A DNA stretch of 64,000 nucleotides from Anaeramoeba ignava BMAN. Lineage: Eukaryota; Protista; Anaeramoebae. Below, one piece after another: positions 45,725-64,000 of this stretch (the stretch's first letter is position 1; the number at the start of each line of letters is the position of its first letter). The DNA lies in contig JAPDFW010000110.1 of NCBI GenBank assembly GCA_028826165.1, positions 62,001 through 126,000 of the forward strand, written 5' to 3'. The notes beneath the pieces are model-generated. The model searched no databases. It was not told the DNA's origin and was given only the letters and a program-made list of their open reading frames with translations. The position numbers and the translations under genes were made by a program.

Positions 45725-45792
45725 ATAAAAAGAATAAAAAGAATAAATTTTCAATTTTCAATTCATTTTTTTCATTTTTTTTCTTTTTAAAA

Positions 45793-47573
45793 ATGAATGA
45801 AATTTTATTTTTTGGTTTCAATAAAAACCAAAATTTATCAAAAATAAACCAGAAATAATAACAAAACCAATTCAATTTAAATTTGAAAATGAAAATGAAA
45901 ATGAAAATGAAAAACAAATTAAACAAATTTCAACAGGTTTTTTTTCAACAATTTTCCTTTTTGAAAATGGAAAAGCAATAGAATATTTAAAAGATTCAAA
46001 TCAAAATCCTGAAAAAATCCAAATTGAAGAAATTCAAATTGAAAATATTCAAAAAGTAACTGCTGGTGTTCATAATGAAGCTATTTTAACAATAGAAGGA
46101 AATGTATTTATAAAAGGTTTTATGTTAAATCCAAATCAATTTATCAATATTTCATCATTAATTGAAGATACAAATGATAGAATAATTAAAGATATTGCTT
46201 GTGTATCGAATTCAATTTACTTATTAACTTCAAATCAAAATGTTTATGGAATTGGTGATAATTATGCAGGTCAACTTGGTTTAGATTCTTTAATACTTAG
46301 AAAAGAAGAAAAACCAATTTTAATGATGAAAAATGTTTCTAAAATATTTTCAGGAAATTCTTCACTTTATGTTTTTCTTTTAAATTCAAATCAAGAATTA
46401 TTTGGATGCGGATATAATTATTCTGGTCAAATTGGATTAGGAGAATCAAGAAAAGAAGCATATATCAAAAAATTAACCAAAATCCAAAATATTCCAAAAG
46501 GCAAAATAATTGATATTCAATGTGGAGGATTCCATTCAATAATGTTGATTGAAGATGAAGATCAAAATCCAAAAAGAAAGCTTTATTCATGTGGAAATTA
46601 TCAAGTTAATGGACTTGGGAAAAATGAAGATACTTATGAATTTACTGAAATCAAATCATCTTTATTTGAAAATGATGATAATATTCTTGATTTTTCTTGT
46701 GGAAATTCTCATACTTTGATTTTAACATCCAATTCAAAAATGATCGGATTTGGAAATAATTCTAATGGTAAATTAGGAACTGGAGATACAAATGATCAAT
46801 CAATTCCAATTCAAATTGAACTTCCTAAATTAAGATTTAGTGAAAATATTTTCAGTTACCATATTCTTTGTGGAAATGAAAATTCATTTCTTTATTATTC
46901 TCCTCCTTCTTTTTCCAATCTTGAAGAAGATTTGATAAAATTATTTGAAAGAAAAGAATTTTGTGATATTTCATTTAAAACCAAAAATGGAGAAATAATT
47001 GAAGCTCATAAATTAATATTGAAATATAGATTAAATCAAAATCAAAATCAAAATGAAATTGAAAAACTTCAAGAAATTATTTCAAAAAAATCAATTAAAG
47101 AATCAAATCAAATATTTGAAATGATTTATTCAAACAAATCTACAATAAATCCAAAATTATATTCCGAAATCAAAGAAATTATAAATTCAAATGAAAAAAT
47201 AGAAGAAACAATGAAAAGAATTTATTTAAATGAAAATGAAAAAGAAAAAGATTTTATTATTGAAAGAAAAGAAAAACAATATAAATTTCCTAAATTAATA
47301 TTAATAATGAGAAGTGAATTATATCGAGGAATGTTTTTATCTGTAACAGAAGATACTTCTAATAAAGTTACAGATTATAGTGAATTAAGTAATAAATCAT
47401 TTCAAATATTTGAATATTGGATTTATTCAAATCAAATTAAAGATGAAATTCAAATTACACAAGAAATGATTGAAGAAATTCAAATTGGAATTGATTATTT
47501 TCAATTAAATCAAACACATCCAAATTTATTTGATTTATTAATTAAAAAATTTAATAATCAAAATCAAAATTAA
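45793..47573 (+). CDS. RCC1-repeat + tandem BTB protein, inverted relative to the array; 1-nt deletion near 45830 (error or pseudogene)
   Basis: ATG 45793 MNEILFFG as in paralogs; frame lost at AACCAAAATTT, then continuous into ORF 46122; GxNxxGQLG repeats, EFCDISF..AHKLIL, RSELYRGMF. Confidence 0.8.
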
Positions 47574-47910
47574 AATTAAAATCAAAATTAAAATTAAAAT
47601 TAAAATCAAAATTAAAATTAAAATTAAAATTAAAATTAAAATTAAAATCAAAATCAAAATTAAAATTAAAATTAAAATCAAAATCAAAATTAAAATTAAA
47701 ATTAAAATTAAAATTAAAATTAAAATTAAAATCAAATTAAAATTAAAATTAAAATTAAAATCAAATTAAAATTAAAATCAAATTTGAAATTAAAATCAAA
47801 ATCAAAATCAAAATCAATATTAAAATTGAAATTAAAATTAAAACCAAAATTAAAATTAAAACCAAAATTAAAATTAAAATCAAAATTAAAATTAAAACCA
47901 ATATTAAAAT
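47555..47910 (+). repeat. (AAAATY)n hexamer tract continuing from the NQN C-terminus into the intergenic region
   Basis: Read directly. Confidence 0.85.
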
Positions 47911-47949
47911 TGAAATAAAAAAATTGTTTTTCATTTGAATTTTAATTTT

Positions 47950-49389
47950 TTAAATGAAAAAAGTCTCAAGTTCATCAACAACCCATTTATTTAAAGAACC
48001 AGCTAAATAACTTTGAGCTTGATTTGTATTATAAGTAAATCCGTTTGGTAAATTGTAACTACAACCAAAAGTTGCATCTCCAGGTTGTAAATTATGTTTG
48101 AGACAAAAATCAAGTCCAGTTCTTCCAAAAACTGGACCCCATTCTGATGAAAAATATTGAAGAGCGTTTTCCTCTTCTCCTTTTTTAATTGGAAATTTCT
48201 CTGGTTTTCTATCATTCTTATCATTTCTTAATGAAAAAATAAAAGCATTTGAATCTCGAATATGCATTCTCTCTTCTCTTTGAATCCATCCAACTTTTGT
48301 AAATCCTCCAAAAATATAATCATCTTTTGTTTTGATAATAACTAGTGTTTTTCCTTTGTTATCAACTTTTTCATGCCAATTTTTAGCTGAAAATCCATCT
48401 TTTGTTGCTGAAAATCCTTTTTTCATTTTAGAAAAGAATTTATTATCATTTATCCATTCTTTTAATTTTTCAATATGTTCTTTTTCTTGAATAATTTCTG
48501 ATTCAAAATGAAATCTTGTTTTGAAAATTAATGAATTTTCTTTTTCAATAAGTTGATTTAATTCTTTTTCTTTTTTTTGATCATTTTCAAGTTTTTGGAA
48601 TTGAATTAATTTTTGTGAAATTTGATTTGGAATTAAATTTTCTTTTAGAGTATCTTTAAGTTCTTTTTCGGAGAAATCAATAAATCTAATTTTATCAATA
48701 ATATTTGAAATTTGATTTTGTAATTTTTCTTTTTCTTCTTTTTCAAGTTTTTGATTTTTTTTTTCTTGATTAATTTTTGATTTATGTTTTCCCCATTTTA
48801 TTATTGATTGAAATGTTTCAAATTCATTTATTGAAATTTCATCATTTAATAATATTGAATTTAAATGATTTTCTTCAAGTTCAAGAAAAAATGAAGTTTT
48901 GATAAATTCTTTAAAATTTTCAGAAATAAATTGATAAGAAAAATCCAATAAATGATTTAAGTTCATTGATTCAGATAATTTAAGAATATCAACAATAGTT
49001 TCAATTTGTAAATTGTTTTTGATAAAATTTGAAGAAACTTCAATTAATTCATCAATTAAATATTTTGATGAAAAAAGTAAAATTTGAATTGCATTTTCTA
49101 AATTAATTTCAATTTTTCCTGAATAAAAATAATTCAAAATTGGGAATAAGATTGAACTTGAAACATCTTTTAGAATCATTTTATTTTCTTGGAATTCTTT
49201 CATTTTTGAATTAAAAAGAGATTTAAAATATTGACTTCTTGAAGAAAGAATTGATTTATGAGTTTTAAATGAAATTTGATTTTGTTCACAAATTATTTCA
49301 AAATCAAAATAATTTTCTTCTTCTTTTTGATTTTGAAATAAATTTTTTAAATCATTTGAAAGTTTTTCTAAATTTGAATAAGTTTCCAT
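47950..49389 (-). CDS. BTB-BACK-TLDc protein, copy 1
   Basis: THKSILSSRSQYFKSLF BTB, BACK (EFETFQSIIKWG), TLDc (ATKDGFSAKNWHEKVDNKGKTLVIIKT..IFGGFT..GPVFG..ELETF). Confidence 0.9.
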   Translation of the reverse strand: METYSNLEKLSNDLKNLFQNQKEEENYFDFEIICEQNQISFKTHKSILSSRSQYFKSLFNSKMKEFQENKMILKDVSSSILFPILNYFYSGKIEINLENAIQILLFSSKYLIDELIEVSSNFIKNNLQIETIVDILKLSESMNLNHLLDFSYQFISENFKEFIKTSFFLELEENHLNSILLNDEISINEFETFQSIIKWGKHKSKINQEKKNQKLEKEEKEKLQNQISNIIDKIRFIDFSEKELKDTLKENLIPNQISQKLIQFQKLENDQKKEKELNQLIEKENSLIFKTRFHFESEIIQEKEHIEKLKEWINDNKFFSKMKKGFSATKDGFSAKNWHEKVDNKGKTLVIIKTKDDYIFGGFTKVGWIQREERMHIRDSNAFIFSLRNDKNDRKPEKFPIKKGEEENALQYFSSEWGPVFGRTGLDFCLKHNLQPGDATFGCSYNLPNGFTYNTNQAQSYLAGSLNKWVVDELETFFI

Positions 49390-49672
49390 TTTTATTAAAA
49401 AAATTTTGAAAAAAATGAAAAAAATGAAAATAAAATTTTTGAATTTTAATTTAATTTAATTTAATTTAATTTAATTTAATTTAATTTAATTTCTGAGTTT
49501 TTCTTGTTTTTATTTTTGTTTTTGCTTTTGGTTTTCGTATCTCTCTTCCTTTTAATTTTGGTTTTGGTTTTACTTTTGGTTTTGGTTTTACTTTTAATTT
49601 TGGCTTTTCTTTTACTTTTGGATTTGGATTTGGATTTGGATTTGGAAGGAATTTTGAATTGAGATTGAAATT

Positions 49673-51454
49673 TTAATTATTAAATTTCCTAATTAATAAA
49701 TCAAATAAATTTGGATTTGTTTGATTTAATTGAAAATAATCAATTCCAATTTTAATTTCATCAATAATTTCTTGTGTAATTTCGATTCCTTCTTTAAGTT
49801 GATTTGAATAAATCCAATATTCAAATATTTCAAATGATTTATTACTTAATTCACTATAATCTGTAACTTTATTAGATTTATCTTCTGTTACAGATAAAAA
49901 CATTCCTCGATATAACCCACTTCTCATTATTAATATTAATTTAGGAAATTTATATTGTTTTTCTTTTCTTTCAATTATAAAATCTTTTTCTTTTTCATAT
50001 TCGATTAATTCTTTCATTAATTCTTCAATTGATCCAAATAAATTAAAATCAATTTCAATTTCAGAATATAATTTTGGATTTATTTTGGAATTGTTTGAAT
50101 AAATTATTTCAAATATTTGATTTGCTTCTTTAATTGATTTTTTTGAAATAATTTCTTTAAGTTTTTCAATTTGATTTTCATCTTGTCCAATTATTGTTTG
50201 TAATATTAATTTATGAACTCCAATTATTTCTCCATTTTTGGTTTTAAATGAAATATCACAAAATTCTTTTCTTCGAAATAAATTGATCAAATCTTCTTCA
50301 ATATTGGAAAAAGAAGGAGAATAATAATAAAGAAATGAACTCCAAGCTCCACAAGAAACATGATAATTAGAAATATCATCATTAAATCTTAATTTAGGAA
50401 GTTCAATTTGAATTGGAATTGATTGATAATTTGTATTTCCATTTCCTAATTGACCATATAAATTTCTTCCAAATGAGATAACTTTTCCATTTGAAGTTAA
50501 AACCAAACTATGATCATATCCAACAGAAAAATCAAGAATATTATCATTTTCAAATAAAGATGATTTGATTTCAGTAAATTCATAAGTATTTTCATTATTT
50601 TTGTTAAGTCCATTAAATAGATTCCATCCACATGAATAAAGTTTTCTTTTTGAATTTTCATTTTCATTTTCAATCAGCATTATTGAATGAAATCCTCCAC
50701 ATTGAATATCAATTATTTTGCCTTTTGGGATATTTTGTATTTTGGTTAATTTTTGGATTTTTTTTTGCGCTTTTTTTGATTCTCCTAATCCAAGTTGACC
50801 GTATCTATTATATCCGCATCCAAATAATTCTTGATTTGAATTTAAAAGAAAAACAGAAAGTGAAGAATTTCCTGAAAATATTTTAGAAACATTTTTCATC
50901 ATTAAAATTGGTTTTTTTGTTGTTTCAAATATTTCGGGATCAAAACCAAGTTGACCAAAATCATTTGAACCAATTCCATAAACATTTTGATTTGAACCAA
51001 TTCCATAAACATTTTGATTTGAAGTTAATAAGTAAATTGAATTTGCTCCAGAAACAATATCTTGGATTATTCTATCATTTGGATCTTGAATTAATGATGA
51101 AATATTGATAAATTCTTTTGGATTTTTTGGATTAATATTTAATCCTTTTGCAAATACATTTCCTTCTATTGTTAAAACAGCTTCATTCTGCGTACCCATG
51201 TTTATTTTTTGAATATTTTCAATTTGGATTTTTGAAGGATTTTGATTTGAATTTCTTAAGTATTCTATTGCTTTTCCATTTTCAAAAAGGAAAACTATTG
51301 AAAATTTGCCTGAAGAAATTTGTTTAATTTGATTTTCATTTTCATTTTCATTTTCATTTTCAAATTTAAATTGAATTGGTTTTGTTATTTTATTTGGTTT
51401 ATTTTTGATAAGTTTTGGTTTTTCATTTGAACCAAAAAATAAACAATCATTCAT
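49673..51454 (-). CDS. RCC1-repeat + tandem BTB protein
   Basis: Full ORF; RCC1 GxNxxGQLG repeats and two BTB motifs; 27-nt internal duplication. Confidence 0.9.
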   Translation of the reverse strand: MNDCLFFGSNEKPKLIKNKPNKITKPIQFKFENENENENENQIKQISSGKFSIVFLFENGKAIEYLRNSNQNPSKIQIENIQKINMGTQNEAVLTIEGNVFAKGLNINPKNPKEFINISSLIQDPNDRIIQDIVSGANSIYLLTSNQNVYGIGSNQNVYGIGSNDFGQLGFDPEIFETTKKPILMMKNVSKIFSGNSSLSVFLLNSNQELFGCGYNRYGQLGLGESKKAQKKIQKLTKIQNIPKGKIIDIQCGGFHSIMLIENENENSKRKLYSCGWNLFNGLNKNNENTYEFTEIKSSLFENDNILDFSVGYDHSLVLTSNGKVISFGRNLYGQLGNGNTNYQSIPIQIELPKLRFNDDISNYHVSCGAWSSFLYYYSPSFSNIEEDLINLFRRKEFCDISFKTKNGEIIGVHKLILQTIIGQDENQIEKLKEIISKKSIKEANQIFEIIYSNNSKINPKLYSEIEIDFNLFGSIEELMKELIEYEKEKDFIIERKEKQYKFPKLILIMRSGLYRGMFLSVTEDKSNKVTDYSELSNKSFEIFEYWIYSNQLKEGIEITQEIIDEIKIGIDYFQLNQTNPNLFDLLIRKFNN

Positions 51455-51512
51455 TTTTAAAAAGAAAAAAATGAAAAAAATGAAAAATAATTTTTTTGAA
51501 TTTTAAAAAATT

Positions 51513-52982
51513 TTAAATGAAAAAGGTCTCAAGTTCATCAATTTTCCATGATCTAAAAGAACCAGCTAAATAATTTTTAGATTTATTTGTATTGAAAGTT
51601 AATCCTTTAGGAAGAGTGTATCTACAACCAAAATTTGTATAACCTTGTAGATTTTCATAAAGCCAAATATCATCATGAAGATAATCTGTAGAATACCCAA
51701 AAATTGGACCATAATCAAAATGATACATAATTGCATTTTGTGATTCTTCTTTTCGAACTGGAAATTTTTGAGGAGAATAATTCTTTGGATTTTTGATACT
51801 GAACATAAATGCATTTGGATCTTCAATACAACCTTTTGAAGTAGAATATTCCACACTCCATTTTGTTTTATCATTTGTAAATCCAACTTTTGTAAATCCT
51901 CCAAAAATATAATTATCTTTTGTTTTGATAATAACTAATGTTTTTCCTTTGTTATCAACTTTTTCATGCCAATTTTTAGCTGAAAATCCATCTTTTGTTG
52001 CTGAAAATCCTTTTTTCATTTTAGAAAAGAATTTATTATCATTTATCCATTCTTTTAATTTTTCAATATGTTCTTTTTCTTGAATAATTTCTGATTCAAA
52101 ATGAAATCTTGGTTTGAAAATTAATGAATTTTCTTTTTCAATAAGTTGATTTAATTCTTTTTCTTTTTTTTGATTTTTTTCAAGTTTTTGGAATTGAATT
52201 AATTTTTGTGAAATTTGATTTGGAATTAAATTTTCTTTTAGAGTATCTTTAAGTTCTTTTTTTGAGAAATCAATAAATCTGATTTTATCAATAATATTTG
52301 AAATTTGATTTTGTAATTTTTCTTTTTCTTCTTTTTCAAGTTTTTGATTTTTTTTTTCTTGATTAATTTTTGATTTATATTTTCCCCATTTTATTATTGA
52401 TTGAAATGTTTCAAATTCATTTATTGAAATTTCATCATTTAATAATATTGAATTTAAATGATTTTCTTCAAGTTCAAGAAAAAATGAAGTTTTGATAAAT
52501 TCTTTAAAATTTTCAGAAATAAATTGATAAGAAAAATCCAATAAATGATTTAAGTTCATTGATTCAGATAATTTAAGAATATCAACAATAGTTTCAATTT
52601 GTAAATTGTTTTTGATAAAATTTGAAGAAACTTCAATTAATTCATCAATTAAATATTTTGATGAAAAAAGTAAAATTTGAATTGCATTTTCTAAATTAAT
52701 TTCAATTTTTCCTGAATAAAAATAATTCAAAATTGGGAATAGAATTGAACTTGAAACATCTTTTAGAATCATTTTATTTTCTTGGAATTCTTTCATTTTT
52801 GAATTAAAAAGAGATTTAAAATATTGACTCCTTGAAGAAAGAATTGATTTATGAGTTTTAAATGAAATTTGATTTTGTTCACAAATTATTTCAAAATCAA
52901 AATAATTTTCTTCTTCTTTTTGATTTTGAAATAAATTTTTTAAATCATTTGAAAGTTTTTCTAAATTTGAATAAGTTTCCAT
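51513..52982 (-). CDS. BTB-BACK-TLDc protein, copy 2
   Basis: Near-identical to 47950-49389 up to GGFTKVG, then a different TLDc C-terminal half. Confidence 0.9.
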   Translation of the reverse strand: METYSNLEKLSNDLKNLFQNQKEEENYFDFEIICEQNQISFKTHKSILSSRSQYFKSLFNSKMKEFQENKMILKDVSSSILFPILNYFYSGKIEINLENAIQILLFSSKYLIDELIEVSSNFIKNNLQIETIVDILKLSESMNLNHLLDFSYQFISENFKEFIKTSFFLELEENHLNSILLNDEISINEFETFQSIIKWGKYKSKINQEKKNQKLEKEEKEKLQNQISNIIDKIRFIDFSKKELKDTLKENLIPNQISQKLIQFQKLEKNQKKEKELNQLIEKENSLIFKPRFHFESEIIQEKEHIEKLKEWINDNKFFSKMKKGFSATKDGFSAKNWHEKVDNKGKTLVIIKTKDNYIFGGFTKVGFTNDKTKWSVEYSTSKGCIEDPNAFMFSIKNPKNYSPQKFPVRKEESQNAIMYHFDYGPIFGYSTDYLHDDIWLYENLQGYTNFGCRYTLPKGLTFNTNKSKNYLAGSFRSWKIDELETFFI

Positions 52983-53105
52983 TTTTATTAAAAAAATTTT
53001 AAAAAAATGAAAAAAATGAAAATAAAATTTTTTAATTTGAATTTTAATTTAATTTAATTTAATTTAATTTAATTTAATTTGAATTTTAATTTAATTTAAT
53101 TTAAT

Positions 53106-55049
53106 TTAATTTAATTTCTGAGTTTTTCTTGTTTTTATTTTTGTTTTTGCTTTTGGTTTTCGTATCTCTCTTCCTTTTAATTTTGGTTTTGGTTTTACTT
53201 TTGGTTTTGGTTTTACTTTTGTTTTTGGCTTTTCTTTTACTTTTGGTTTTGGATTTGGATTTGGAAGGAATTTTGAATTGAGATTGAAATTTTGATTATT
53301 AAATTTGTTAATTAATAAATCAAATAAATTTGGATGAGTTTGATTTAATTGAAAATAATCAATTCCAATTTTAATTTCATCAATAATTTCTTGTGTAATT
53401 TCGATTCCTTCTTTAAGTTGATTTGAATAAATCCAATATTCAAATATTTCAAATGATTTATTACTTAATTCACTATAATCTGTAACTTTATTAGATTTAT
53501 CATCTGTTACAGATAAAAACATTCCTCGATATAACCCACTTCTCATTATTAATATTAATTTAGGAAATTTATATTGTTTTTCTTTTCTTTCAATTATAAA
53601 ATCTTTTTCTTTTTCATATTCAATTAATTCTTTCATTTTTTCTTCAATTGATCCAAATAAATTAAAATCAATTTCAATTTCAGAATATAATTTTGGATTT
53701 ATTTTGGATTTGTTTGAATAAATTATTTCAAATATTTGATTTGCTTCTTTAATTGATTTTTTTGAAATAATTTCTTTAAGTTGTTCAATTTGATTTTCAT
53801 CTTGTCCAATTATTGTTTGTAATATTAATTTATGAACTCCAATTATTTCTCCATTTTGTGTTTTAAATGAAATATCACAAAATTCTTTTCTTCGAAATAA
53901 ATTGATCAAATCTTCTTCAATATTGGAAAAAGAAAGAAAAGGAGAATAATAAAGAAATGAACTCCAAGCTCCACAAGAAACATGATAATTAGAAATATCA
54001 TCATTAAATCGTAATTTAGGAAGTTCAATTTGAATTGGAATTGATTGATGATTTGTATTTCCATTTCCTAATTGACCATATAAATTTCTTCCAAATGAGA
54101 TAACTTTTCCATTTGAAGTTAAAATCAAATTATGATCATATCCAACAGAAAAATCAACAATATTATCATTTTCAAATAAAGATGATTTGATTTCAGTAAA
54201 TTCATAAGTATTTTCATTTTTGCCAAGTCCAATGTAATCATATTTTCCACATGAATAAAGTTTTCTTTTTGGATTTTCATCTTCATCTTCAATCAGCATT
54301 ATTGAATAATTAAATCCACATTGAATATCAATTATTTTGCCTTTTGGAATATTTTGGATTTTGATTAATTTATCGATTTCTGTTTCTTGTATTGATTCTC
54401 CTAATCCAAGTTGACCATGATTATTTTTACCGCATCCAAATAATTCTTGATTTGAATTTAAAAGAAAAACAGATCTTGAAGAATTTCCTGAAAATATTTT
54501 AGAAACATTTTTCATCATTAAAACTGGTTTTTCTGTTGTTTCAAATATTTCGGGATCAAAACCAAGTTGACCAAAATCATTTGAACCAATTCCATAAACA
54601 TTTTGATTTGAAGTTAATAAGTAAATTGAATTTGCTCCAGAAACGATATCTTGGATTATTCTATCATTTGGATCTTGAATTAATGATGAAATATTGATAA
54701 ATTCTTTTGGATTTTTTGGATTAATATTTAATCCTTTTGCAAATACATTTCCTTCTATTGTTAAAACAGCTTCATTCTGCGTACCCATGTTTATTTTTTG
54801 AATATTTTCAATTTGGATTTTTGAAGGATTTTGATTTGAATTTCTTAAGTATTCTATTGCTTTTCCATTTTTAAGAAGGAAAACTATTGAAAATTTGCCT
54901 GAAGAAATTTGTTTAATTTGATTTTCATTTTCATTTTCATTTTCATTTTCATTTTCAAATTTAAATTGAATTGGTTTTGTTATTTTATTTGGTTTATTTT
55001 TGATAAGTTTTGGTTTTTCATTTGAACCAAAAAATAAACAATCATTCAT
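53106..55049 (-). CDS. RCC1-repeat + tandem BTB protein with Lys/Pro-rich basic tail
   Basis: Full ORF; closest paralog is 49673-51454. Confidence 0.9.
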   Translation of the reverse strand: MNDCLFFGSNEKPKLIKNKPNKITKPIQFKFENENENENENENQIKQISSGKFSIVFLLKNGKAIEYLRNSNQNPSKIQIENIQKINMGTQNEAVLTIEGNVFAKGLNINPKNPKEFINISSLIQDPNDRIIQDIVSGANSIYLLTSNQNVYGIGSNDFGQLGFDPEIFETTEKPVLMMKNVSKIFSGNSSRSVFLLNSNQELFGCGKNNHGQLGLGESIQETEIDKLIKIQNIPKGKIIDIQCGFNYSIMLIEDEDENPKRKLYSCGKYDYIGLGKNENTYEFTEIKSSLFENDNIVDFSVGYDHNLILTSNGKVISFGRNLYGQLGNGNTNHQSIPIQIELPKLRFNDDISNYHVSCGAWSSFLYYSPFLSFSNIEEDLINLFRRKEFCDISFKTQNGEIIGVHKLILQTIIGQDENQIEQLKEIISKKSIKEANQIFEIIYSNKSKINPKLYSEIEIDFNLFGSIEEKMKELIEYEKEKDFIIERKEKQYKFPKLILIMRSGLYRGMFLSVTDDKSNKVTDYSELSNKSFEIFEYWIYSNQLKEGIEITQEIIDEIKIGIDYFQLNQTHPNLFDLLINKFNNQNFNLNSKFLPNPNPKPKVKEKPKTKVKPKPKVKPKPKLKGREIRKPKAKTKIKTRKTQKLN

Positions 55050-55160
55050 TTTTAAAAAGAAAAAAAATGAAAAAAAATGAAAAAATGAAATTTAAAATAA
55101 AAAGAGGAAAAAAGCAAAAAATTTGTTTTTAATTTTTATTCCACTTTTTTAAATGATTTT
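55050..55160 (-). promoter_or_regulatory. Conserved RCC1-BTB upstream block: TTTGCTTTTTTCCTCTTTTTATTT followed by tandem TTTCATTTTT
   Basis: Same block at ~57110-57215 and ~59460-59580 (GCTTTTTTCCTC element doubled there). Confidence 0.55.
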
Positions 55161-55339
55161 GATTTTAATTTTGATTTTGATTTTAATTTTAATTTTAATT
55201 TTAATTTTAATTTTAATTTTAATTTTAATTTTAATTTTAATTTTAATTTTAATTTTAATTTTAATTTTGATTTTAATTTTGATTTTGATTTTATAAATGA
55301 ATTTTAATTTTAATTTTGATTTTGATTTTGATTTTAATT

Positions 55340-57109
55340 TTAATTATAATTTTGATTATTAAATTTGTTAATTAATAAATCAAATAAATTTGGATGAGTT
55401 TGATTTAATTGAAAATAATCAATTCCTCTTTTAATTTCATTAATTATTTCTTGTGTAATTTCAATTTCTTCTTTAACTTGATTTGAATAAATCCAATATT
55501 CAAATATTTCAAATGATTTATTACTTAATTCACTATAATCTGTAAATTTAGTAGAATCACCTTCAGTTACAGATAAGAATTTTTCTCGATATAATTCACT
55601 TCTCATTATTAATATTAATTTGGGAAATTTATATTGTTTTTCTTTTCTTTCAATTATAATATCTTTTTCTTTTTCAAAATCAATTAATTCTTTCATTAAT
55701 TCTTCTATTGATTCAAATAAATTAAATTCAATTTCAATTTCTTCATATAATTTTGGATTTATTGTGGATTTGTTTGAATAAATCATTTCAAATATTTGAT
55801 TTGCTTCTTTAGTTGATTTTTTTGAAATAATTTGTTTAAGTTGTTCAATTTGATTTTCATCTTGTCCAATTATTGTTTGTAATATTAATTTATGAGCTTC
55901 AATTATTTCTCCATTTTGTGTTTTAAATGAAATATCACAAAATTCTTTTCTTCTAAATAATTTTATCAAATCTTCTTCAAGATTGGAAAAATAAAGAAAA
56001 GGAGAATAATAAAGAAATGAATTTTCATTTCCACAAAGAATATGATAACTGTAAATATCTTCATTAAATCTTAATTTAGGAAGTTCAATTTGAATTGGAA
56101 TTAATTGCCCTTCTCTGTTACCAGTTCCTAATTGACCATATTCATTATTCCCAAATCCAATAAGTTTTGGTTTTGAAGTTAAAATCAAAGTATGAGAATT
56201 TCCAACAGAAAAATCAATAATATCATCATTTTCAAATAAAGATGATTTGATTTCAGTAAATTCATAAGTATTTTCAGTTTGGCCAAGTCCATTATATAAA
56301 GAAATTCCACATGAATAAAGTTTTCTTTTTGGATTTTCATTTTCATTTTCATCTTCAATCAACATTACTGAATTAGATCCACATTGAATATCAATTATTT
56401 TGCCTTTTGGAATATTTTGGATTTTGGTTAATTTATCGGTTTCTTCTTCTTTTCTTGATTCTCCTAATCCAAGTTGACCATGATCATTATTTCCGCATCC
56501 AAATAATTCTTGATTTGAATTTAAAAGAAAAACATGATTTGAAGAATTTCCTGAAAATATTTTAGAAACATTTTTCATCATTAAAATTGGTTTTTCTGTT
56601 TTTGGAAGTGTTTTAGAATCAAAACCAAGTTGACCATATTGATTTGAACAAATTCCATAAGCATTTTGATTTGAAGTTAATAAGTAAATTGAATTATTTC
56701 CAGAAACAATATCTTGAATTATTCTATCATTTGAATCTTCAATTAATAATGAAATATTCATAAATTCTTTTGGATTATTTTCTGGATTAATATTTTTTCC
56801 TTTTGCAAATACATTTCCTTCTATTGTTAAAATAGCTTCATTTTGAAAACCAACAGTTACTTTTTGAATATTTTCAATTTGGATTTTTTGAGGATTTCTT
56901 TTTGAATTTCTTTCATTTAAATATTCTATTGCTTTTCCATTTTTAAAAAGGAAAATTGTTGCAAAATAGCCTGTTGAAATTTGTTTAATTTGATTTTCAT
57001 TTTCATTTTCATTTTCAAATTTAAATTGAATTGGTTTTGTTATTGCATTCAGTTCATTTTTTAAAAGTTTTGGATGATTATTTGAACCAAAAAATAAACA
57101 ATCATTCAT
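55340..57109 (-). CDS. RCC1-repeat + tandem BTB protein
   Basis: Full ORF with family motifs. Confidence 0.9.
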   Translation of the reverse strand: MNDCLFFGSNNHPKLLKNELNAITKPIQFKFENENENENQIKQISTGYFATIFLFKNGKAIEYLNERNSKRNPQKIQIENIQKVTVGFQNEAILTIEGNVFAKGKNINPENNPKEFMNISLLIEDSNDRIIQDIVSGNNSIYLLTSNQNAYGICSNQYGQLGFDSKTLPKTEKPILMMKNVSKIFSGNSSNHVFLLNSNQELFGCGNNDHGQLGLGESRKEEETDKLTKIQNIPKGKIIDIQCGSNSVMLIEDENENENPKRKLYSCGISLYNGLGQTENTYEFTEIKSSLFENDDIIDFSVGNSHTLILTSKPKLIGFGNNEYGQLGTGNREGQLIPIQIELPKLRFNEDIYSYHILCGNENSFLYYSPFLYFSNLEEDLIKLFRRKEFCDISFKTQNGEIIEAHKLILQTIIGQDENQIEQLKQIISKKSTKEANQIFEMIYSNKSTINPKLYEEIEIEFNLFESIEELMKELIDFEKEKDIIIERKEKQYKFPKLILIMRSELYREKFLSVTEGDSTKFTDYSELSNKSFEIFEYWIYSNQVKEEIEITQEIINEIKRGIDYFQLNQTHPNLFDLLINKFNNQNYN

Positions 57110-57299
57110 TTTTAAAAAGAAAAAAAATGAAAAAAAATGAAAAAATGAAATTTAAAATAAAAAGAGGAAAAAAGCAAAAAATTTTTGTTTTTAATTTTTA
57201 TTCCTCTTTTTTAAATGATTTTAATTTTAATTTTTATTCCTCTTTTTTAAATGATTTGAATTTTAATTTTGATTTTTATTTTAATTTTTGATTTTAATT

Positions 57300-59447
57300 T
57301 TAATTTTGATTATTAAATTTGTTAATTAATAAATCAAATAAATTTGGATGAGTTTGATTTAATTGAAAATAATCAATTCCTTTTTTAATTTCATTAATAA
57401 TTTCTTGTGTAATTTCAATTTCTTCTTTAAGTTGATTTGAATAAATCCAATATTCTAATATTTCAAATGCTTCATCACTTAATTCACTATCATAATTAAA
57501 TTGATTGAATTTATCATCTTTGTTTGATAAAAACATTCCTCGAAATAATTTACTTCTCATTATTAATATTAATTTAGGGAATTTATATTGTTTTTCTTTT
57601 CTTTGAATAATAAAATCTTTTTCATTTTCAAATTCAATTAATTCTTTCATTTTTTCTTCAATTGATCCAAATAAATTAAATTCAATTTCAATTTCTTCAT
57701 ATAATTTTGGATTCACTTTGGAATTGTTTGAATAAATTATTTCAAATATTTGATTTGATTCTTGAATTGATTTTTTTGAAATAATTTGTTGAAGTTTTTC
57801 AATTTGATTTTCATCTTGTCCAATTATTGTTTGTAATATTAATTTATGAGCTTCAATTATCTCTCCATTTTGTGTTTTAAATGAAATATTACAAAATTCT
57901 TTTCTTCGAAATAAATTTATCAAATCTTCTTCAAGATTGGAAAAATAAAGAGGAGAATAATAAAGAAATGATTTGTTAAATCCACAAGAAATATGATAAT
58001 TGGGAATATCTTCATTAAATCTTAATTCAGGAAGTTCAATTTCGATTGGAGTTAATTGTTCTTCTCTGTTACCAGTTCCTAATTGACCATATTCATTATT
58101 CCCAAATCCAATAAGTTTTTGATTTGAAGTTAAAATCAAAGTATGATCATGTCCAACAGAAAAATCAAGAATATTATCATTTTCAAATAAAGATGATTTG
58201 ATTTCAGTAAATTCGTAAGTATCTTCAATTTTGCCAAGTCCATTAATTTTATAATATCCACATGAATAAAGTTTTCTTTTTGGATTTTCATTTTCATTTT
58301 CATCTTCAATCAACATTATTGAATGATCAATTCCACATTGAATATCAATTATTTTGCCTTTTGGAATATTTTGGATTTTGATTAATTTATCGGTTTCTTC
58401 TTCTTTTCTTGATTCTCCTAATCCAAGTTGGCCAGAATTATTCCAACCGCATCCAAATAATTCTTGATTTGAATTTAAAAGAAAAACATGAATTGAAGAA
58501 TTTCCTGAAAATATTTTAGAAACATTTTTCATCATTAAAATTGGTTTTTCTGTTGTTTCAAGTGTTTTAGAATCAAAACCAAGTTGGCCATAAAAATTAG
58601 AACCAACTCCATAAGCATTTTGATTTGAAGTTAATAAGTAAATTGAATTAGAACCAGAAACAATATCTTCAATTACTTTATCATTTGCATCTTCAATTAA
58701 TAATGAAATATTCATAAATTCATCTGTTTGCTCCATCACTGTTGATATGAGAATGTCTGTATTTGAATTTTCCATCAAATCTCGAATATCTGCCGATTTG
58801 TTTTGATCTTCAATTAATTCCGAAATGTTGATCAATTCATTTGGATCTTCTTTTGATTCTGGAATATCGACAATTTGGTTTTCATCATTTAATCCTGGAA
58901 TAATTATCAATTCATTTGGATCTTCTTTTGATTCTGGAATATCGACAATTTGGTTTTCATCATTTAATCCTGGAATAATTATCAATTCATTTGGATCTTG
59001 AGGCAACTCTGAAATATTGAGAAATGAATGGTCATCATTCATAAATCCGGAGTATCTCAATAATTGATTTGGATTATTTGGATCGATATCTCTTCCTTTT
59101 GCAAATACTTCTCCTTCTTTTGTTAGTATTGCTTCATTCCAAGAGCCAACACTTACTTTTTGAATATTTTCTTTAATTTGGATTTTTTGAGGATTGAGAT
59201 TTGAGAAGTTTAAATATTCTATTGCTTTTCCATTTTCAAAAAGGAAAATTGTTGAAAATTCTCCTGTTGAAATTTGTTTAATTTCTTGCTTATTTTCATT
59301 TTCATTTTCATTTTCATTTTCATTTTCATTTTCATTTTCAAATTTAAATTCAATTGGTTTTGTTATTTCATCTTCTTCATTAGAGAAAAGTTTTGCGTTT
59401 TTATTTAAACCAAAAAATAAAATTTGGTTATTTTCATCTGTTGCCAT
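57300..59447 (-). CDS. RCC1-repeat + tandem BTB protein with ~110-aa acidic repeat insertion
   Basis: Full ORF; insertion contains an exact 75-nt duplication. Confidence 0.9.
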   Translation of the reverse strand: MATDENNQILFFGLNKNAKLFSNEEDEITKPIEFKFENENENENENENENENKQEIKQISTGEFSTIFLFENGKAIEYLNFSNLNPQKIQIKENIQKVSVGSWNEAILTKEGEVFAKGRDIDPNNPNQLLRYSGFMNDDHSFLNISELPQDPNELIIIPGLNDENQIVDIPESKEDPNELIIIPGLNDENQIVDIPESKEDPNELINISELIEDQNKSADIRDLMENSNTDILISTVMEQTDEFMNISLLIEDANDKVIEDIVSGSNSIYLLTSNQNAYGVGSNFYGQLGFDSKTLETTEKPILMMKNVSKIFSGNSSIHVFLLNSNQELFGCGWNNSGQLGLGESRKEEETDKLIKIQNIPKGKIIDIQCGIDHSIMLIEDENENENPKRKLYSCGYYKINGLGKIEDTYEFTEIKSSLFENDNILDFSVGHDHTLILTSNQKLIGFGNNEYGQLGTGNREEQLTPIEIELPELRFNEDIPNYHISCGFNKSFLYYSPLYFSNLEEDLINLFRRKEFCNISFKTQNGEIIEAHKLILQTIIGQDENQIEKLQQIISKKSIQESNQIFEIIYSNNSKVNPKLYEEIEIEFNLFGSIEEKMKELIEFENEKDFIIQRKEKQYKFPKLILIMRSKLFRGMFLSNKDDKFNQFNYDSELSDEAFEILEYWIYSNQLKEEIEITQEIINEIKKGIDYFQLNQTHPNLFDLLINKFNNQN

Positions 59448-59596
59448 TCCTATTTTTTTGAAAGAAAAAAATGAAAAAATAAAATTTAAAATAAAAAGAG
59501 GAAAAAAGCAAAAATTTTTTAAATAAAAAAGAGGAAAAAAGCAAAAATTTGTTTTTAATTTTTATTCCACTTTTTTAAATGATTTTAATTTTAATT

Positions 59597-61390
59597 TTAA
59601 TTTTGATTTTTATTTTGATTATTAAATTTTTTAATTAATAAATCAAATAAATTTGGATTTGTTTGATTTAATTGAAAATAATCAATTCCTCTTTTAATTT
59701 CATCAATAATTTCTTGTGTAATTTGAATTTCATCTTTAATTTGATTTGAATAAATCCAATATTCAAATATTTGAAATGATTCATTACTTAATTCACTATA
59801 ATCTGTAACTTTATTAGAAGTATCTTCAGTTACAGATAAAAACATTCCTCGATATAATTCACTTCTCATTATTAATATTAATTTAGGAAATTTATATTGT
59901 TTTTCTTTTCTTTCAATTATAAAATCTTTTTCTTTTTCATTTTCAATTAATTCTTTCATTAATTCTTCTATTGATCCAAATAAATTAAAATCAATTTCAA
60001 TTTCTTCATATAATTTTGGATTTATTGTGGATTTGTTTGAATAAATCATTTCGAATATTTGATTTGATTCTTTAATTGATTTTTTTGAAATAATTTCTTG
60101 AAGTTGTTCAATTTGATTTTCATCTTGTCCAATTATTGTTTGTAATATTAATTTATGAGCTTCAATTATTTCTCCATTTTTGGTTTTAAATGAAATATCA
60201 CAAAATTCTTTTCTTTCAAATAATTTTATCAAATCTTCTTCAAGATTGGAAAAAGAAGTAAGAGAAGGAGAATAATAAAGAAATGAATTGTAATATCCAC
60301 AAGAAATATGATAATTGGAAATATTTTCATTAAATCTTAATTTAGGAAGTTCGATTTGAATTGGAGTTAATTCTTCTTCTGAATTTCCAGTTCCTAATTG
60401 ACAATATTCATTATTCCCAAATCCTATTAATTTTGAATTAGAAGTTAAAATCAAAGTATGATAATCTCCAACAGAAAAATCAAGAATATTATCATTTTCA
60501 AATAAAGGTGATTTGATTTCAGTAAATTCATAAGTATCTTCTTCTTTTTCAAGTCCATTAAATTCCCAACTTCCACATGAATAAAGTTTTCTTTTTGGAT
60601 TTTGATTTTCATCTTCAATCAACATTATTGAATGAGAATAAGAACATTGAATATCAATTATTTTACCTTTTGGAATATTTTGGATTTGGGTTAATTTTTG
60701 GATTATTTTTTTTCTTCTTGATTTTCCTAATCCAAGTTGACCAGAATAATTATCACCGAATCCAAATAATTCTTGATTTGAATTTAAAAGAAAAACAAAA
60801 TCTGAATTATTTCCTGAAAATATTTTAGAAACATTTTTCATCATTAAAATTGGTTTTTTGTTGTTTTCAAGTGTTTTAGAATCAAAACCAAGTTGACCAT
60901 CTTCATTTGAACCAATTCCATAAGCATTTTGATTTGAAGTTAATAGATAAATTGAATACTCTCCAGAAACAATATCTTCAATTATTCTATCATTTTTATC
61001 TTCAATTAATGATGAAATATTGATAAATTGATTTGGATTTTCTGAATTAATATCTTTTCCTTTTGCAAATACATTTCCTTCTTTTGTTAAAATAGCTTCA
61101 ATATAAGCGCCAACAGATACTTTTTGAATATTTTCTTCAATTTGGATTTTTGAAGGATTTTGATTTGAATCATTTTCATTTAAATATTCTATTGCTTTTC
61201 CATTTTCAAAAAGGAAAATTGTTGAAAATAAACTTGATGAAATTTGTTTAATTTGTTTTTCATTTTCATTTTCATTTTCATTTTCATTTTCATTTTCAAA
61301 TTTAAATTGAATTGGTTTTTTTATTTTTTTTGGTTTATTTTTGATAAGTTTTGGATTTTCATTTGAACCAAAAAATAAAATTTCATTCAT
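59597..61390 (-). CDS. RCC1-repeat + tandem BTB protein
   Basis: Full ORF with family motifs. Confidence 0.9.
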   Translation of the reverse strand: MNEILFFGSNENPKLIKNKPKKIKKPIQFKFENENENENENENEKQIKQISSSLFSTIFLFENGKAIEYLNENDSNQNPSKIQIEENIQKVSVGAYIEAILTKEGNVFAKGKDINSENPNQFINISSLIEDKNDRIIEDIVSGEYSIYLLTSNQNAYGIGSNEDGQLGFDSKTLENNKKPILMMKNVSKIFSGNNSDFVFLLNSNQELFGFGDNYSGQLGLGKSRRKKIIQKLTQIQNIPKGKIIDIQCSYSHSIMLIEDENQNPKRKLYSCGSWEFNGLEKEEDTYEFTEIKSPLFENDNILDFSVGDYHTLILTSNSKLIGFGNNEYCQLGTGNSEEELTPIQIELPKLRFNENISNYHISCGYYNSFLYYSPSLTSFSNLEEDLIKLFERKEFCDISFKTKNGEIIEAHKLILQTIIGQDENQIEQLQEIISKKSIKESNQIFEMIYSNKSTINPKLYEEIEIDFNLFGSIEELMKELIENEKEKDFIIERKEKQYKFPKLILIMRSELYRGMFLSVTEDTSNKVTDYSELSNESFQIFEYWIYSNQIKDEIQITQEIIDEIKRGIDYFQLNQTNPNLFDLLIKKFNNQNKNQN

Positions 61391-61435
61391 TTTTGAAAAG
61401 AAAAAAAATGAAAAAAATGAAAAATAATTTTAATT

Positions 61436-63244
61436 TCAATTTTGATTTTGATTTTGATTTTGATTTTGATTATTAAATTTGTTAATTAATAAATCAAATA
61501 AATTTGGATTTGTTTGATTTAATTGAAAATAATCAATTCCAATTTCAATTTCATTAATGATTTCTTGTGTAATTTGAATTTCATCTTTAATTTGATTTGA
61601 ATAAATCCAATATTCAAATATTTGAAATGATTTATTACTTAATTCACTATAATCTGTAACCTTATTAGAAGTATCTTCTGTTACAGATAAAAACATTCCT
61701 CGATATAATTCACTTCTCATTATTAATATTAATTTAGGAAATTTATATTGTTTTTCTTTTCTTTCAATAATAAAATCTTTTTCATTTTCATTTTCATTTT
61801 CATTTAAATAAATTCTTTTAATTGTTTCTTCAATTTTTTCATTGGAATTTATAATTTCTTTAATTTCAGAATATAATTTTGGATTTATTATTCTGTTTGA
61901 ATAAATCATTTCAAATATTTGATTTGATTCTTTAATTGATTTATTTGAAATAATTTCTTGAAGTTTTTCAATTTGATTTTCATTTTGATTTAATCTATAT
62001 TTCAATATTAATTTATGAGCTTCAATTATTTCTCCATTTTTGGTTTTAAATGAAATATTACAAAATTCTTTTCTTCTAAATAATTTTATCAAATCTTCTT
62101 CAAGATTGGAAAAAGAAAGAGGAGGATAATAAATAAATGTTCTTTGATATCCACAAGAAATATGATAATTGGAAATATTTTCATTAAATCTTAATTCAGG
62201 AAGTTTAATTTGAATTGGAATTTTTTGATATTTTGTATCTCCAGTTCCTAATTGGCCATATGAATTACTTCCAAATCCAATCAGTTTTTGATTTGAAGTT
62301 AAAATCAAAGTATGATAATCTCCAACAGAAAAATCAAGAATACTATCATCATTTTCAAATAAAGATGATTTGATTTCAGTAAATTCATAAGTTTCTTCAT
62401 CTTTGCCAAGTCCATTAACTTCCCAACTTCCACATGAATAAAGTTTTCTTTTTGGATTTTGATTTTCATTTTCAATCAACATTATTGAATGAGAATAAGA
62501 ACATTGAATATCAATTATTTTACCTTTTGGAATATTTTGGATTTGGGTTAATTTTTGGATTTTTATTTCTTCTTTTCTTGATTCTCCTAATCCAAGTTGA
62601 CCATGATCATTATATCCGCATCCAAATAATTCTTGATTTGAATTTAAAAGAAAAACATGATTTGAAGAATTTCCTGTAAATATTTTAGAAACATTTTTCA
62701 TCATTAAAATTGGTTTTTCTGTTATATCAACTAAATATAAACCAAGTTGACCAGAATAATTTGAACCAATTCCATAAACATTATGATTTGAAGTTAATAA
62801 GTAAATTGAATTAGATCCAGAAACAATATCTTCAATTATTCTATCATTTGCATCTTCAATTAATGATGAAATATTGATAAATTGATTTGGATTTTCTGAA
62901 TTAATATATCTTCCTTTTGCAAATACATTTCCTTCTTTTGTTAAAATAGCTTCAATATAAGCGCCAACAGTTACTTTTTGAATATTTTCTTCAATTTGTA
63001 TTTTTTCAGGATTTTGTTTTGAATCTTTTTCTCGTAAGTATTCTATTGCTTTTCCATTTTTAAAAAGGAAAATTGTTGAAAAATAACCTGTTGAAATTTG
63101 TTTAATTTGTTTTTCATTTTCATTTTCGTTTTCATTTTCATTTTCATTTTCAAATTTAAATTGAATTGGTTTTTTTATTTCATTTGGTTTATTTTTTATA
63201 AGTTTTGGATTTTCATTTGAACCAAAAAATAAAATTTCATTCAT
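61436..63244 (-). CDS. RCC1-repeat + tandem BTB protein
   Basis: Full ORF with family motifs. Confidence 0.9.
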   Translation of the reverse strand: MNEILFFGSNENPKLIKNKPNEIKKPIQFKFENENENENENENEKQIKQISTGYFSTIFLFKNGKAIEYLREKDSKQNPEKIQIEENIQKVTVGAYIEAILTKEGNVFAKGRYINSENPNQFINISSLIEDANDRIIEDIVSGSNSIYLLTSNHNVYGIGSNYSGQLGLYLVDITEKPILMMKNVSKIFTGNSSNHVFLLNSNQELFGCGYNDHGQLGLGESRKEEIKIQKLTQIQNIPKGKIIDIQCSYSHSIMLIENENQNPKRKLYSCGSWEVNGLGKDEETYEFTEIKSSLFENDDSILDFSVGDYHTLILTSNQKLIGFGSNSYGQLGTGDTKYQKIPIQIKLPELRFNENISNYHISCGYQRTFIYYPPLSFSNLEEDLIKLFRRKEFCNISFKTKNGEIIEAHKLILKYRLNQNENQIEKLQEIISNKSIKESNQIFEMIYSNRIINPKLYSEIKEIINSNEKIEETIKRIYLNENENENEKDFIIERKEKQYKFPKLILIMRSELYRGMFLSVTEDTSNKVTDYSELSNKSFQIFEYWIYSNQIKDEIQITQEIINEIEIGIDYFQLNQTNPNLFDLLINKFNNQNQNQNQNQN

Positions 63245-63315
63245 TTTTGAAAAGAAAAAAAATGAAAAAAATGAAAAAAATAATTTTAATTTTGATTTTA
63301 ATTTTAATTTTAATT

Positions 63316-64000
63316 TTAATTATTAAATTTGTTAATTAATAAATCAAATAAATTTGGATTTGTTTGATTTAATTGAAAATAATCAATTCCAATTTCAATT
63401 TCATTAATTATTTCTTGTGTAATTTCAATTTCATCTTTAATTTGATTTGAATAAATCCAATATTCAATTATTTGAAATGATTTATTACTTAATTCACTAT
63501 AATCTGTAACCTTATTAGAAGTATCTTCAGTTACAGATAAAAACATTCCTCGATATAATTCACTTCTCATTATTAATATTAATTTAGGAAATTTATATTG
63601 TTTTTCTTTTCTTTCAATTATAAAATCTTTTTCATTTTCATTTTCATTTAAATAAATTCTTTTCATTGTTTCTTCAATTTTTTCATTGGAATTTATAATT
63701 TCTTTAATTTCAGAATATAATATTGGATTTATTATTCTGTTTGAATAAATCATTTCAAATATTTGATTTGATTCTTTAATTGATTTTTTTGAAATAATTT
63801 CTTGAAGTTTTTCAATTTGATTTTCATTTTGATTTAATCTATATTTCAATATTAATTTATGAGCTTCAATTATTTCTCCATTTTCGGTTTTAAATGAAAT
63901 GTTACAAAATTCTTTTCTTCTAAATAATTTTATCAGATCTTCTTCAAGATTGGAAAAAGGAGAAGGAGAATAATAAAGAAATGATTTGAAATCTCCACAA
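63316..64000 (-). CDS. RCC1-repeat + tandem BTB protein, 3' part (5' end beyond window)
   Basis: CGDFKSFLYYSPSPFSNLEEDL...RSELYRGMF... open to the window edge. Confidence 0.88.
   Translation of the reverse strand, partial: CGDFKSFLYYSPSPFSNLEEDLIKLFRRKEFCNISFKTENGEIIEAHKLILKYRLNQNENQIEKLQEIISKKSIKESNQIFEMIYSNRIINPILYSEIKEIINSNEKIEETMKRIYLNENENEKDFIIERKEKQYKFPKLILIMRSELYRGMFLSVTEDTSNKVTDYSELSNKSFQIIEYWIYSNQIKDEIEITQEIINEIEIGIDYFQLNQTNPNLFDLLINKFNN

Follow-up and report, generated by a model that had tools for sequence, protein, structure and literature searches.

A tandem array of genes, each encoding an RCC1-like propeller followed by two BTB domains, was found at positions 45793-64000 of a 64,000-nt stretch of DNA from the protist Anaeramoeba ignava BMAN (assembly GCA_028826165.1, contig JAPDFW010000110.1, positions 62,001 to 126,000 of the forward strand), referred to below as the window. 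As determined from open reading frames (ORFs) and alignment, 7 copies of the gene in the array are complete and 1 is cut; the gene belongs to a family of about 1,200 in this genome. Members of the family share a nearly constant scaffold, vary extensively at residues located on one face of the propeller, and show more diversity at that face than at the synonymous sites of the scaffold. The reading best supported by the sequences, to which we give slightly better than even chances, is that these genes constitute an inherited intracellular recognition repertoire, in which a variable propeller face would be joined to a constant BTB-BTB effector docking on Cul3 and would be diversified by gene conversion and selection. 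Within this reading, the recognition repertoire has good support and the docking on Cul3 is plausible. An earlier model-made note on the same DNA (the sequence-only reading) had described variable loops on a constant scaffold. That observation is confirmed, and every motif series listed in it was reproduced (SCG-xxxx-NG, QCG-xxH-S, G-xNxx-GQ, CG-xxxS-F, G-xxx-EA). The scale of the family and the gene conversion go beyond it.

Residue numbers refer throughout to copy 6 (59597-61390, minus strand, 597 aa), in which the propeller covers aa 1-380, the first BTB domain (BTB1) approximately 381-470, and the second (BTB2) approximately 485-597. An RCC1-like domain followed by a BTB domain was recognized by Pfam in all copies tested; the former matches PF25390, PF00415, and PF13540, and BTB2 matches PF00651 with E values from 1e-9 to 1e-11. 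The AlphaFold2 model displays a 7-bladed propeller and two BTB domains (predicted local distance difference test, pLDDT, 87.6), and Foldseek comparison gave template modelling (TM) scores of 0.74-0.83 to RCC1, HERC1/2, RPGR, and UVR8. Sequence identity to RCC1 is only 18%. The Pfam matches, the seven blades of the AlphaFold2 model, and the Foldseek matches place the protein in the RCC1-like domain (RLD) superfamily.

The position of the variation was determined from column entropies in an alignment of 116 distinct paralog proteins. The mean column entropy is 0.54 bit, but values of 2.5-3.7 bits are found in 26 columns, each of which contains 10-17 residue types. These hypervariable residues are 9, 11, 12, 54, 95, 96, 112, 144, 145, 163, 175, 197, 213, 215, 229, 251, 252, 274, 276, 309, 310, 326, 328, 339, 366, and 367. 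Twelve of them are found among the 24 residues of the A-B loops and 14 among the 89 residues of the C-D loops, with none among the 93 residues of the B-C and D-A loops, the 164 strand residues, or the 210 residues of the BTB half. The earlier claim of a constant scaffold and BTB2 with variable loops is therefore borne out, all 26 sites lying in propeller loops and 0 in the BTB half. Because the A-B and C-D loops of an antiparallel four-stranded blade share a face, all 26 sites map to one face of the model and none to the opposite one, an assignment that is based on DSSP strand topology and the alignment to UVR8 rather than on measured distances.

Three variable patches recur in each blade: after "CG", at the +1 and +3 positions of G-x-N-x-x-G-Q, and just before strand D. 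Among solved structures, UVR8 is closest to the propeller in sequence. Residues 309/310 and 366/367 align to W-R of the UVR8 motif GWRHT, and residues 326/328 align to GWNKFGQ (GWNxxGQ); those residues form the face through which UVR8 dimerises and binds partners. The idea that the loops form a binding face agrees with this alignment, in which the variable positions are the same loop positions as the UVR8 interface. UVR8 has the same 7-bladed RCC1 fold and interface positions aligned to the hypervariable residues, but it is a single conserved photoreceptor without a BTB domain and shares only ~20% identity with the family. When the 26 residues of each paralog are read as a signature, 115 of the 116 paralogs carry one that no other paralog has. 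Tyr, Asp, Asn, Ser, Trp, and Arg are abundant at these sites. Tyr makes up 18%, Glu 9%, Asp 8%, Arg 4.6%, Leu 3.3%, Ile 2.1%, and Trp 1.8% of the residues observed, whereas an expectation driven by A+T content would give Ile 22%, Leu 14%, Asp 1%, and Trp 0.1%. Such a composition is typical of binding sites.

The family was counted in the whole genome by short conserved segments. A 30-mer of blade 4 gave 1,143 matches and a 27-mer of BTB2 gave 1,259 (<=2 mismatches), with 0 matches for the reversed controls. The family thus comprises ~1,150-1,260 copies and, at 1.8 kb per gene, occupies ~5% of the 42.8-Mb genome; if most copies are annotated, they represent ~8% of the ~14,900 genes implied by the figures of the genome paper (PMC11550330). 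Matches appear in runs spaced ~2 kb apart, indicating tandem arrays. Of the 73 matches that were scored, at least 70 span the full length; they lie on dozens of contigs, show 79-83% identity, and have open frames of 585-722 aa. In each of 33 distinct extracted copies, the frame stays open for 450 codons or more. We considered and rejected a ciliate code (TAA = Gln), since the internal TAA codons arise where matches overrun the true stop into (AATTAA)n. In a protein search, 809 proteins were matched at E<1e-5; the best 120, which include two from the window's own contig, are A. ignava proteins at 77-80% identity. An origin of the DNA in a dictyostelid, also considered, was rejected on the strength of these matches. 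At identities as low as 33%, each full-length relative looked up still belongs to A. ignava. In the sister species A. flamelloides, the nearest protein has 1,590 aa, several RCC1-like domains, and a C-terminal BTB. Among these matches, the family appears specific to the A. ignava lineage. Dozens of annotated BTB2-only proteins of 143-160 aa were also seen (P0309-P0339), and clustering at 90% identity gives groups with as many as 44 members. Such proteins may represent gene models cut short, fragments, or BTB modules that stand alone.

Many copies carry the submitters' name 'Btk-binding protein-related'. RCC1 and BTB are not mentioned in the main text of the genome paper, and its supplements hold no usable entry for the family or its locus tags (PMC11550330). 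In the literature searched, Anaeramoeba and BTB occur together only in unrelated passages of one paper. No published description of the family was found.

Diversity was compared between site classes in 33 distinct open copies (29 from other contigs and 4 from the window), of which 32 (29 and 3) were used in most tests. At the 26 hypervariable sites, nucleotide diversity (pi) at codon positions 1/2/3 is 0.63/0.48/0.35. The remaining propeller codons give 0.10/0.07/0.07, and those of the BTB half 0.07/0.04/0.07. By the Nei-Gojobori method, the proportion of nonsynonymous differences (pN) at hypervariable sites is 0.54, and the proportion of synonymous differences (pS) in the scaffold is 0.09-0.10. 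Across 496 pairs, the median ratio of the two is 5.7, and the lowest is 2.7. This diversity is too high for neutrality, in agreement with the earlier claim of a diversified family. Shuffling cannot lift the pairwise diversity of neutral sites above that of linked synonymous sites. Saturation of synonymous sites was also considered as the cause of the low scaffold divergence and was rejected; both A and T are used at scaffold 4-fold sites (pooled A:T = 1832:1043), yet pi per site is 0.093.

The same contrast appears in a codon model. An MG94-type likelihood, implemented in our own code rather than PAML or HyPhy, was fitted on an IQ-TREE tree of the scaffold. The ratio of nonsynonymous to synonymous rates (omega) is 0.43 for the scaffold (propeller 0.53, BTB 0.27), and it reaches 9.4 in the hypervariable codons if the synonymous rate of the scaffold is imposed on them (twice the log-likelihood difference, 2dlnL, = 1600 versus omega = 1). 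Omega exceeds 1 at 43 sites after Bonferroni correction. Forty-two of these are in the propeller, and 38 of the 42 are in top-face loops (Fisher p = 2e-18 against other propeller residues). At 292 sites, omega is significantly below 1. The resolution of this pattern extends to single codons: the AAT codons 162, 214, and 327 are invariant (pi ~0 at all three positions) between near-saturated codons, and a regional mutation hotspot was rejected for this reason. Single-codon resolution, residue composition, and equivalent positions in seven blades point to selection at the protein level. Together, these comparisons of sequences indicate diversifying selection acting with gene conversion.

Evidence for exchange between copies comes from several measures of linkage. 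Pairwise identity at hypervariable sites is 0.153, close to the 0.161 expected under independent assortment, and dimorphic scaffold residues show no linkage past ~5 residues. The nucleotide correlation r2 declines from 0.68 (<10 nt) to 0.21 (91-300 nt) and to 0.03 beyond 900 nt, the level of independent sites, and site pairs with four gametes rise with distance from 18% to 90%. Close pairs are mosaics in which the flanks of differing loops are 2-3 times more divergent. Copies 2 and 3, for example, are 93% identical, with 25 codon differences in aa 211-300 and 0-3 per 30-codon window elsewhere. These patterns show that short segments are exchanged among the copies, which behave as a recombining population. 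Hexamer arrays flanking the genes are plausible substrates for unequal exchange. Synonymous singletons make up 57% versus 26% expected, an excess consistent with recent growth of the family.

The excess of rare synonymous variants could also be taken as the mark of a recent burst of a largely functionless or selfish tandem repeat, amplified perhaps through its microsatellite flanks, in which the loops vary since they are unconstrained. Fragments and one frameshifted copy do exist, and no transcriptome ORF for the core family was present in the databases searched. Nevertheless, unconstrained sites cannot exceed synonymous diversity ~6-fold, and the residue composition at the loops is far from the mutational expectation. 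The scaffold is under constraint (omega 0.27-0.53; 292 sites significantly below 1), 1.8-kb ORFs remain open in an 80% A+T genome, and a conserved leader is kept at each copy. This account is decidedly improbable. Purifying selection on the scaffold, long frames kept open at such A+T content, and the conserved leader also provide indirect evidence that the proteins are made.

The constant half of the protein was examined as a possible cullin adaptor. Among solved structures, BTB2 is closest in sequence to the BTB domain of the Cul3 adaptor KBTBD4 (E = 2.4e-4), and in a phmmer alignment V520-T-E522 corresponds to L-K-E of KBTBD4, the phi-x-E motif. This motif is kept in most copies, with N-K-D in copy 5. 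The model of aa 380-597 alone has a pLDDT of 90 and a predicted TM score (pTM) of 0.86. Its best structural match is to single-chain tethered Miz1-BCL6 BTB heterodimers (4u2m, TMq 0.57), followed by the SPOP BTB bound to Cul3 (4eoz, TMt 0.78), KBTBD4, and KBTBD2-CRL3; the SPOP, KBTBD4, and BCL6 BTB matches have TMt of about 0.7-0.78. In this model, BTB1 and BTB2 are predicted to pack as an intramolecular pseudo-dimer. No BACK domain was detected by Pfam in family copies.

A search for cullins in the genome found an ORF on contig C58 (L033) that matches human Cullin-3 best, at 428 bits versus 363 for CUL4B. It is the single Cul3-like locus, the remaining cullins being of Cul4 and Cul1/2 types. 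Two observations on those remaining genes were made in passing. Cul4-like loci are unusually many, with four on contigs C64, C71, C74, and C109 (L031, L032, L035, L036), among which L035 was assigned from its N-terminus and tail only, both matching L031. Cul1 is present as a tandem pair on C57.

The order RLD-BTB-BTB is common to this family and to IBTK of humans and Btb1 of Schizosaccharomyces pombe, in which the BTB pair is required for Cul3 binding (PMC4447969). N-terminal ankyrin repeats and a long C-terminal region are present in IBTK/Btb1 and absent in this family, whose N-terminus is a propeller strand. In addition, IBTK is a single conserved gene with a known substrate bound via its C-terminus, while here ~1,200 copies carry a hypervariable propeller face. 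By domain order the family can be called IBTK-like in architecture; membership would call for the ankyrin repeats. Because of the likeness to KBTBD4 and SPOP, the phi-x-E motif, the Cul3-like cullin, and the order shared with IBTK/Btb1, a Cul3-adaptor role is plausible.

In the mechanism proposed, each gene would produce a cytosolic protein made of a seven-bladed RCC1-like propeller and two BTB domains folded onto each other. The propeller would be the recognition part, with 2-6 residues per blade, located in the A-B loop, where the C-D loop starts, and ahead of strand D, almost freely variable and ~26-43 residues in total spread over one face. The BTB-BTB half would serve as the constant effector, most likely docking on the Cul3-type cullin, so that proteins bound by the propeller would be ubiquitinated and degraded. 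The repertoire would have three sources. Tandem duplication would supply copies; frequent short-tract gene conversion or unequal exchange would hold the scaffold at ~9% synonymous divergence while shuffling the loops; and diversifying selection would act on the loop residues. By analogy with what has been proposed for MATH-BTB and F-box adaptors, the proteins recognized may be foreign or selfish ones.

Several observations tell against this proposal and have to be set beside it. No transcriptome-derived (EukProt) ORF for the core family appears among the full-length, fragment, and module-only database matches. Two divergent relatives do have such an ORF, and the absence is weak evidence because assemblers collapse families of this kind. 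BTB1 is degenerate, without strand B3; no 3-box could be shown, the protein ending one helix (H581-596) after the BTB2 core; and BTBs that do not bind Cul3 (BCL6, BACH) match BTB2 about as well as Cul3 adaptors do, so the fold alone does not separate the two. With regard to selection, the site-wise dN/dS excess that was looked for on the earlier suggestion holds in one form and fails in another. Measured against the synonymous rate of the scaffold it is strong, as given above, but when the hypervariable codons are given their own synonymous rate, which is 6.4x that of the scaffold, omega is 1.33 and not significantly above 1. The selection argument consequently rests on the comparison with scaffold synonymous diversity. 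Four-fold sites adjoining hypervariable codons are also 2.6-fold more diverse (0.19 vs 0.074). Such raised diversity at linked synonymous sites is expected if variants were long kept while their surroundings were homogenised, but a local mutational effect would predict it too. Recombination, moreover, breaks the single-tree assumption of the codon model, and for this reason the diversity comparison is preferred over omega.

The synonymous data just described are the principal argument for a mechanism at the level of DNA, in which hypermutation or templated, diversity-generating-retroelement (DGR)-like change would write the loop codons and selection would only filter them. Hypervariable codons show a synonymous rate ~6 times as high as the scaffold does, diversity at the adjacent 4-fold sites is raised, and many hypervariable sites sample mainly NNT codons. 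Changes at hypervariable sites are not adenine-specific. Such a mechanism would have to spare invariant codons flanked by two saturated ones (AAT 214) and to be precise to the codon at equivalent positions in 21 separate loops. Raised linked diversity is also expected from balanced variation in a recombining family, and to our knowledge no such mechanism is known in eukaryotic germlines, though no search aimed at a reverse transcriptase or template was made. Targeted diversification is therefore regarded as very improbable, the least probable of the explanations considered here.

A second group of observations concerns what the proteins do after binding. The variable face might be a genuine binding surface without any degradation, with the BTB-BTB half stabilising or oligomerising the protein or recruiting another effector, and the family might regulate or scaffold small GTPases and membrane trafficking. 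RCC1-like domains are classical GTPase regulators. In 15 of the 118 full-length paralogs (13%), the C-terminus consists of a Lys-rich segment and C-[LFS]-I-F, a GTPase-like polybasic CaaX tail that predicts prenylation and membrane anchoring; examples are proteins P0018, P0021, P0038, and P0041 and loci L004, L019, and L026. Ras/Rho-type GTPase domains joined to the same BTB-BTB module in a RhoBTB-like manner were also seen (P0363, P0372, P0088); P0088 combines its GTPase domain with an entire RCC1-BTB copy. The A. ignava Ras-BTB-BTB proteins are 37% identical to the family over the BTB-BTB module, and the likeness of BTB2 to BCL6/BACH-type domains, about as close as to Cul3 adaptors, fits as well. 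Expanded gene families of the Anaeramoeba genome include Rab/TBC (PMC11550330). On the other hand, ~1,200 freely assorting surfaces far outnumber the plausible endogenous partners, and hypervariability of the face with which relatives bind their partners argues against one conserved GTPase partner. The retained phi-x-E motif, the position of KBTBD4 as best sequence match of BTB2, and the architecture shared with the Cul3-binding IBTK/Btb1 also count against this account. Binding without degradation is rather unlikely. Under the proposed Cul3-linked repertoire, the ~13% of copies with CaaX tails would work at membranes.

Other combinations of these domains are known. RhoBTB consists of a GTPase and tandem BTBs and binds Cul3, and RCBTB1/2 combine RCC1 repeats with a BTB domain. 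In contrast to the family described here, both are small and conserved, and neither has hypervariable surfaces.

Elsewhere, too, cullin adaptors form large families with fast turnover. Nematodes and plants have expanded MATH-BTB and F-box families in which the domain that binds substrates, but not the one that binds cullin, is under positive selection; foreign proteins were suggested as the targets of these adaptors (Thomas 2006, PMC1524861, summarised in PMC4334554). Their recognition fold is MATH or FBA, whereas an RCC1 propeller is used here at a copy number several-fold higher. The variability in A. ignava also forms a regular lattice of 3 loops x 7 blades, and the host is a free-living anaerobic protist. 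The closest evolutionary parallel is the HNWD family of Podospora anserina, including het-d and het-e, in which a few positions of each WD40 repeat, located on the interaction face of the propeller, are hypervariable and subject to diversifying selection (PMC1805685, PMC2873952). A variable propeller face, concerted evolution, and exchange between loci are common to both systems. The differences are that HNWD consists of 10 genes of STAND/NLR type with a WD40 fold and a cell-death domain, as opposed to RCC1 and BTB here, and that exchange in HNWD takes place between repeats, compared to whole-gene paralogs in A. ignava.

Since het-d and het-e carry the same signature, in which concerted evolution accompanies a variable interaction face, we also considered that the family might serve amoebae or genomes in recognising one another, for example in allorecognition, in mating or hybrid incompatibility, or in toxin-antidote conflict, and not in defence against microbes. 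Ubiquitin-ligase adaptor families of Caenorhabditis (F-box/BTB) are also reported to drive hybrid incompatibility. However, the HNWD family has 10 members compared to ~1,200 here, this family contains no cell-death or NACHT-type domain, and nothing is known on cell fusion or sex in A. ignava. This explanation is improbable.

A more specific form of the preferred recognition repertoire can be formulated, which we offer tentatively and consider clearly less probable than the general one. The ~1,200 genes would form an antibody-like germline repertoire, each face recognising a different foreign or selfish protein and handing it to Cul3, with gene conversion making new specificities. The proteins recognised may be those of viruses, bacterial effectors or symbionts, transposons, or inteins. 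Expression may also be limited to some of the receptors at any one moment, and this would account for the missing assembled transcripts.

Intracellular immunity based on cullin adaptors has been proposed in nematodes and plants, where the evidence is diffuse. We know of no comparable case described in free-living protists. The A. ignava family would be an unusually clean and very large case, with a constant scaffold, a regular lattice on one face, a constant effector, and allele-like exchange. It makes three matters testable: the generation of a germline repertoire without somatic recombination, what a symbiont-housing anaerobic amoeba must recognise in its cytoplasm, and the use of the RCC1 propeller as a general binder scaffold.

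The array in the window, whose DNA is 80% A+T, was earlier taken as a tandem run of eight copies. That count stands as 7 full copies and 1 cut copy, but the run is interrupted by two interleaved BTB-BACK-TLDc genes outside the family, identified by Pfam at 47950-49389 and 51513-52982, both on the minus strand. Copy 1 (45793-47573, plus strand; ORF, Pfam) has a 1-nt deletion near codon 12 that leads to a stop at codon 22, and its remainder is open from 46122. All other copies lie on the minus strand. Copy 2 (49673-51454, 593 aa; ORF, Pfam, alignment) carries a 27-nt internal duplication at 50963-51023, and copy 3 (53106-55049, 647 aa) has a Lys/Pro-rich C-terminal tail. Copy 4 (55340-57109, 589 aa) and copy 7 (61436-63244, 602 aa) were defined by ORF and alignment. 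Copy 5 (57300-59447, 715 aa; ORF, Pfam, alignment) has an insert of ~120 aa that separates blade 2 from blade 3, sits in a loop of the non-variable face, and includes a 75-nt unit repeated 2.3-2.8 times (58831-59039). Copy 8 (63316-64000) is cut by the window end and retains only the last blade and the BTB half.

Every copy is flanked by similar hexamer arrays. The (AAAATT)n array at 47547-47921 (63 units) runs on from the NQNQ tail of copy 1, another of 35 units forms the spacer between copies 3 and 4 (55156-55366), and (AATCAA/AATTAA)n downstream of the genes extends the NQNQ tail. A motif search identified a conserved leader of ~30 nt with two TCATT (initiator-like) elements, which abuts the ATG of copy 6 (61391-61419, minus strand). 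The motif was also matched upstream of copies at 45764, 55078, 57138, and 63273 (5 matches in all, 0 expected), the last of these being the leader upstream of copy 7 at 63245-63273 (minus strand). The TCATT leader resembles the initiator element of parabasalid promoters.

Additional observations were made in and around the array. Intergenic spacers are as short as about 45-70 nt. In copy 3, read-through at 53106-53250 gives the 50-aa Lys/Pro-rich tail from TTTTGG/TTTTGC-type repeats. The two BTB-BACK-TLDc genes are near-identical, and their differences are mostly within the TLDc domain. Just upstream of the array, at 45000-45531, is an 18-nt satellite (AAATATAATTTAATTTAA, 30 copies, 91% matches). 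Farther upstream, 29124-34721 on the plus strand encodes a 1,096-aa armadillo-repeat protein (P0123, annotated by the submitters as 'aardvark') fused to a more divergent RCC1-BTB unit with 62% identity to the family.

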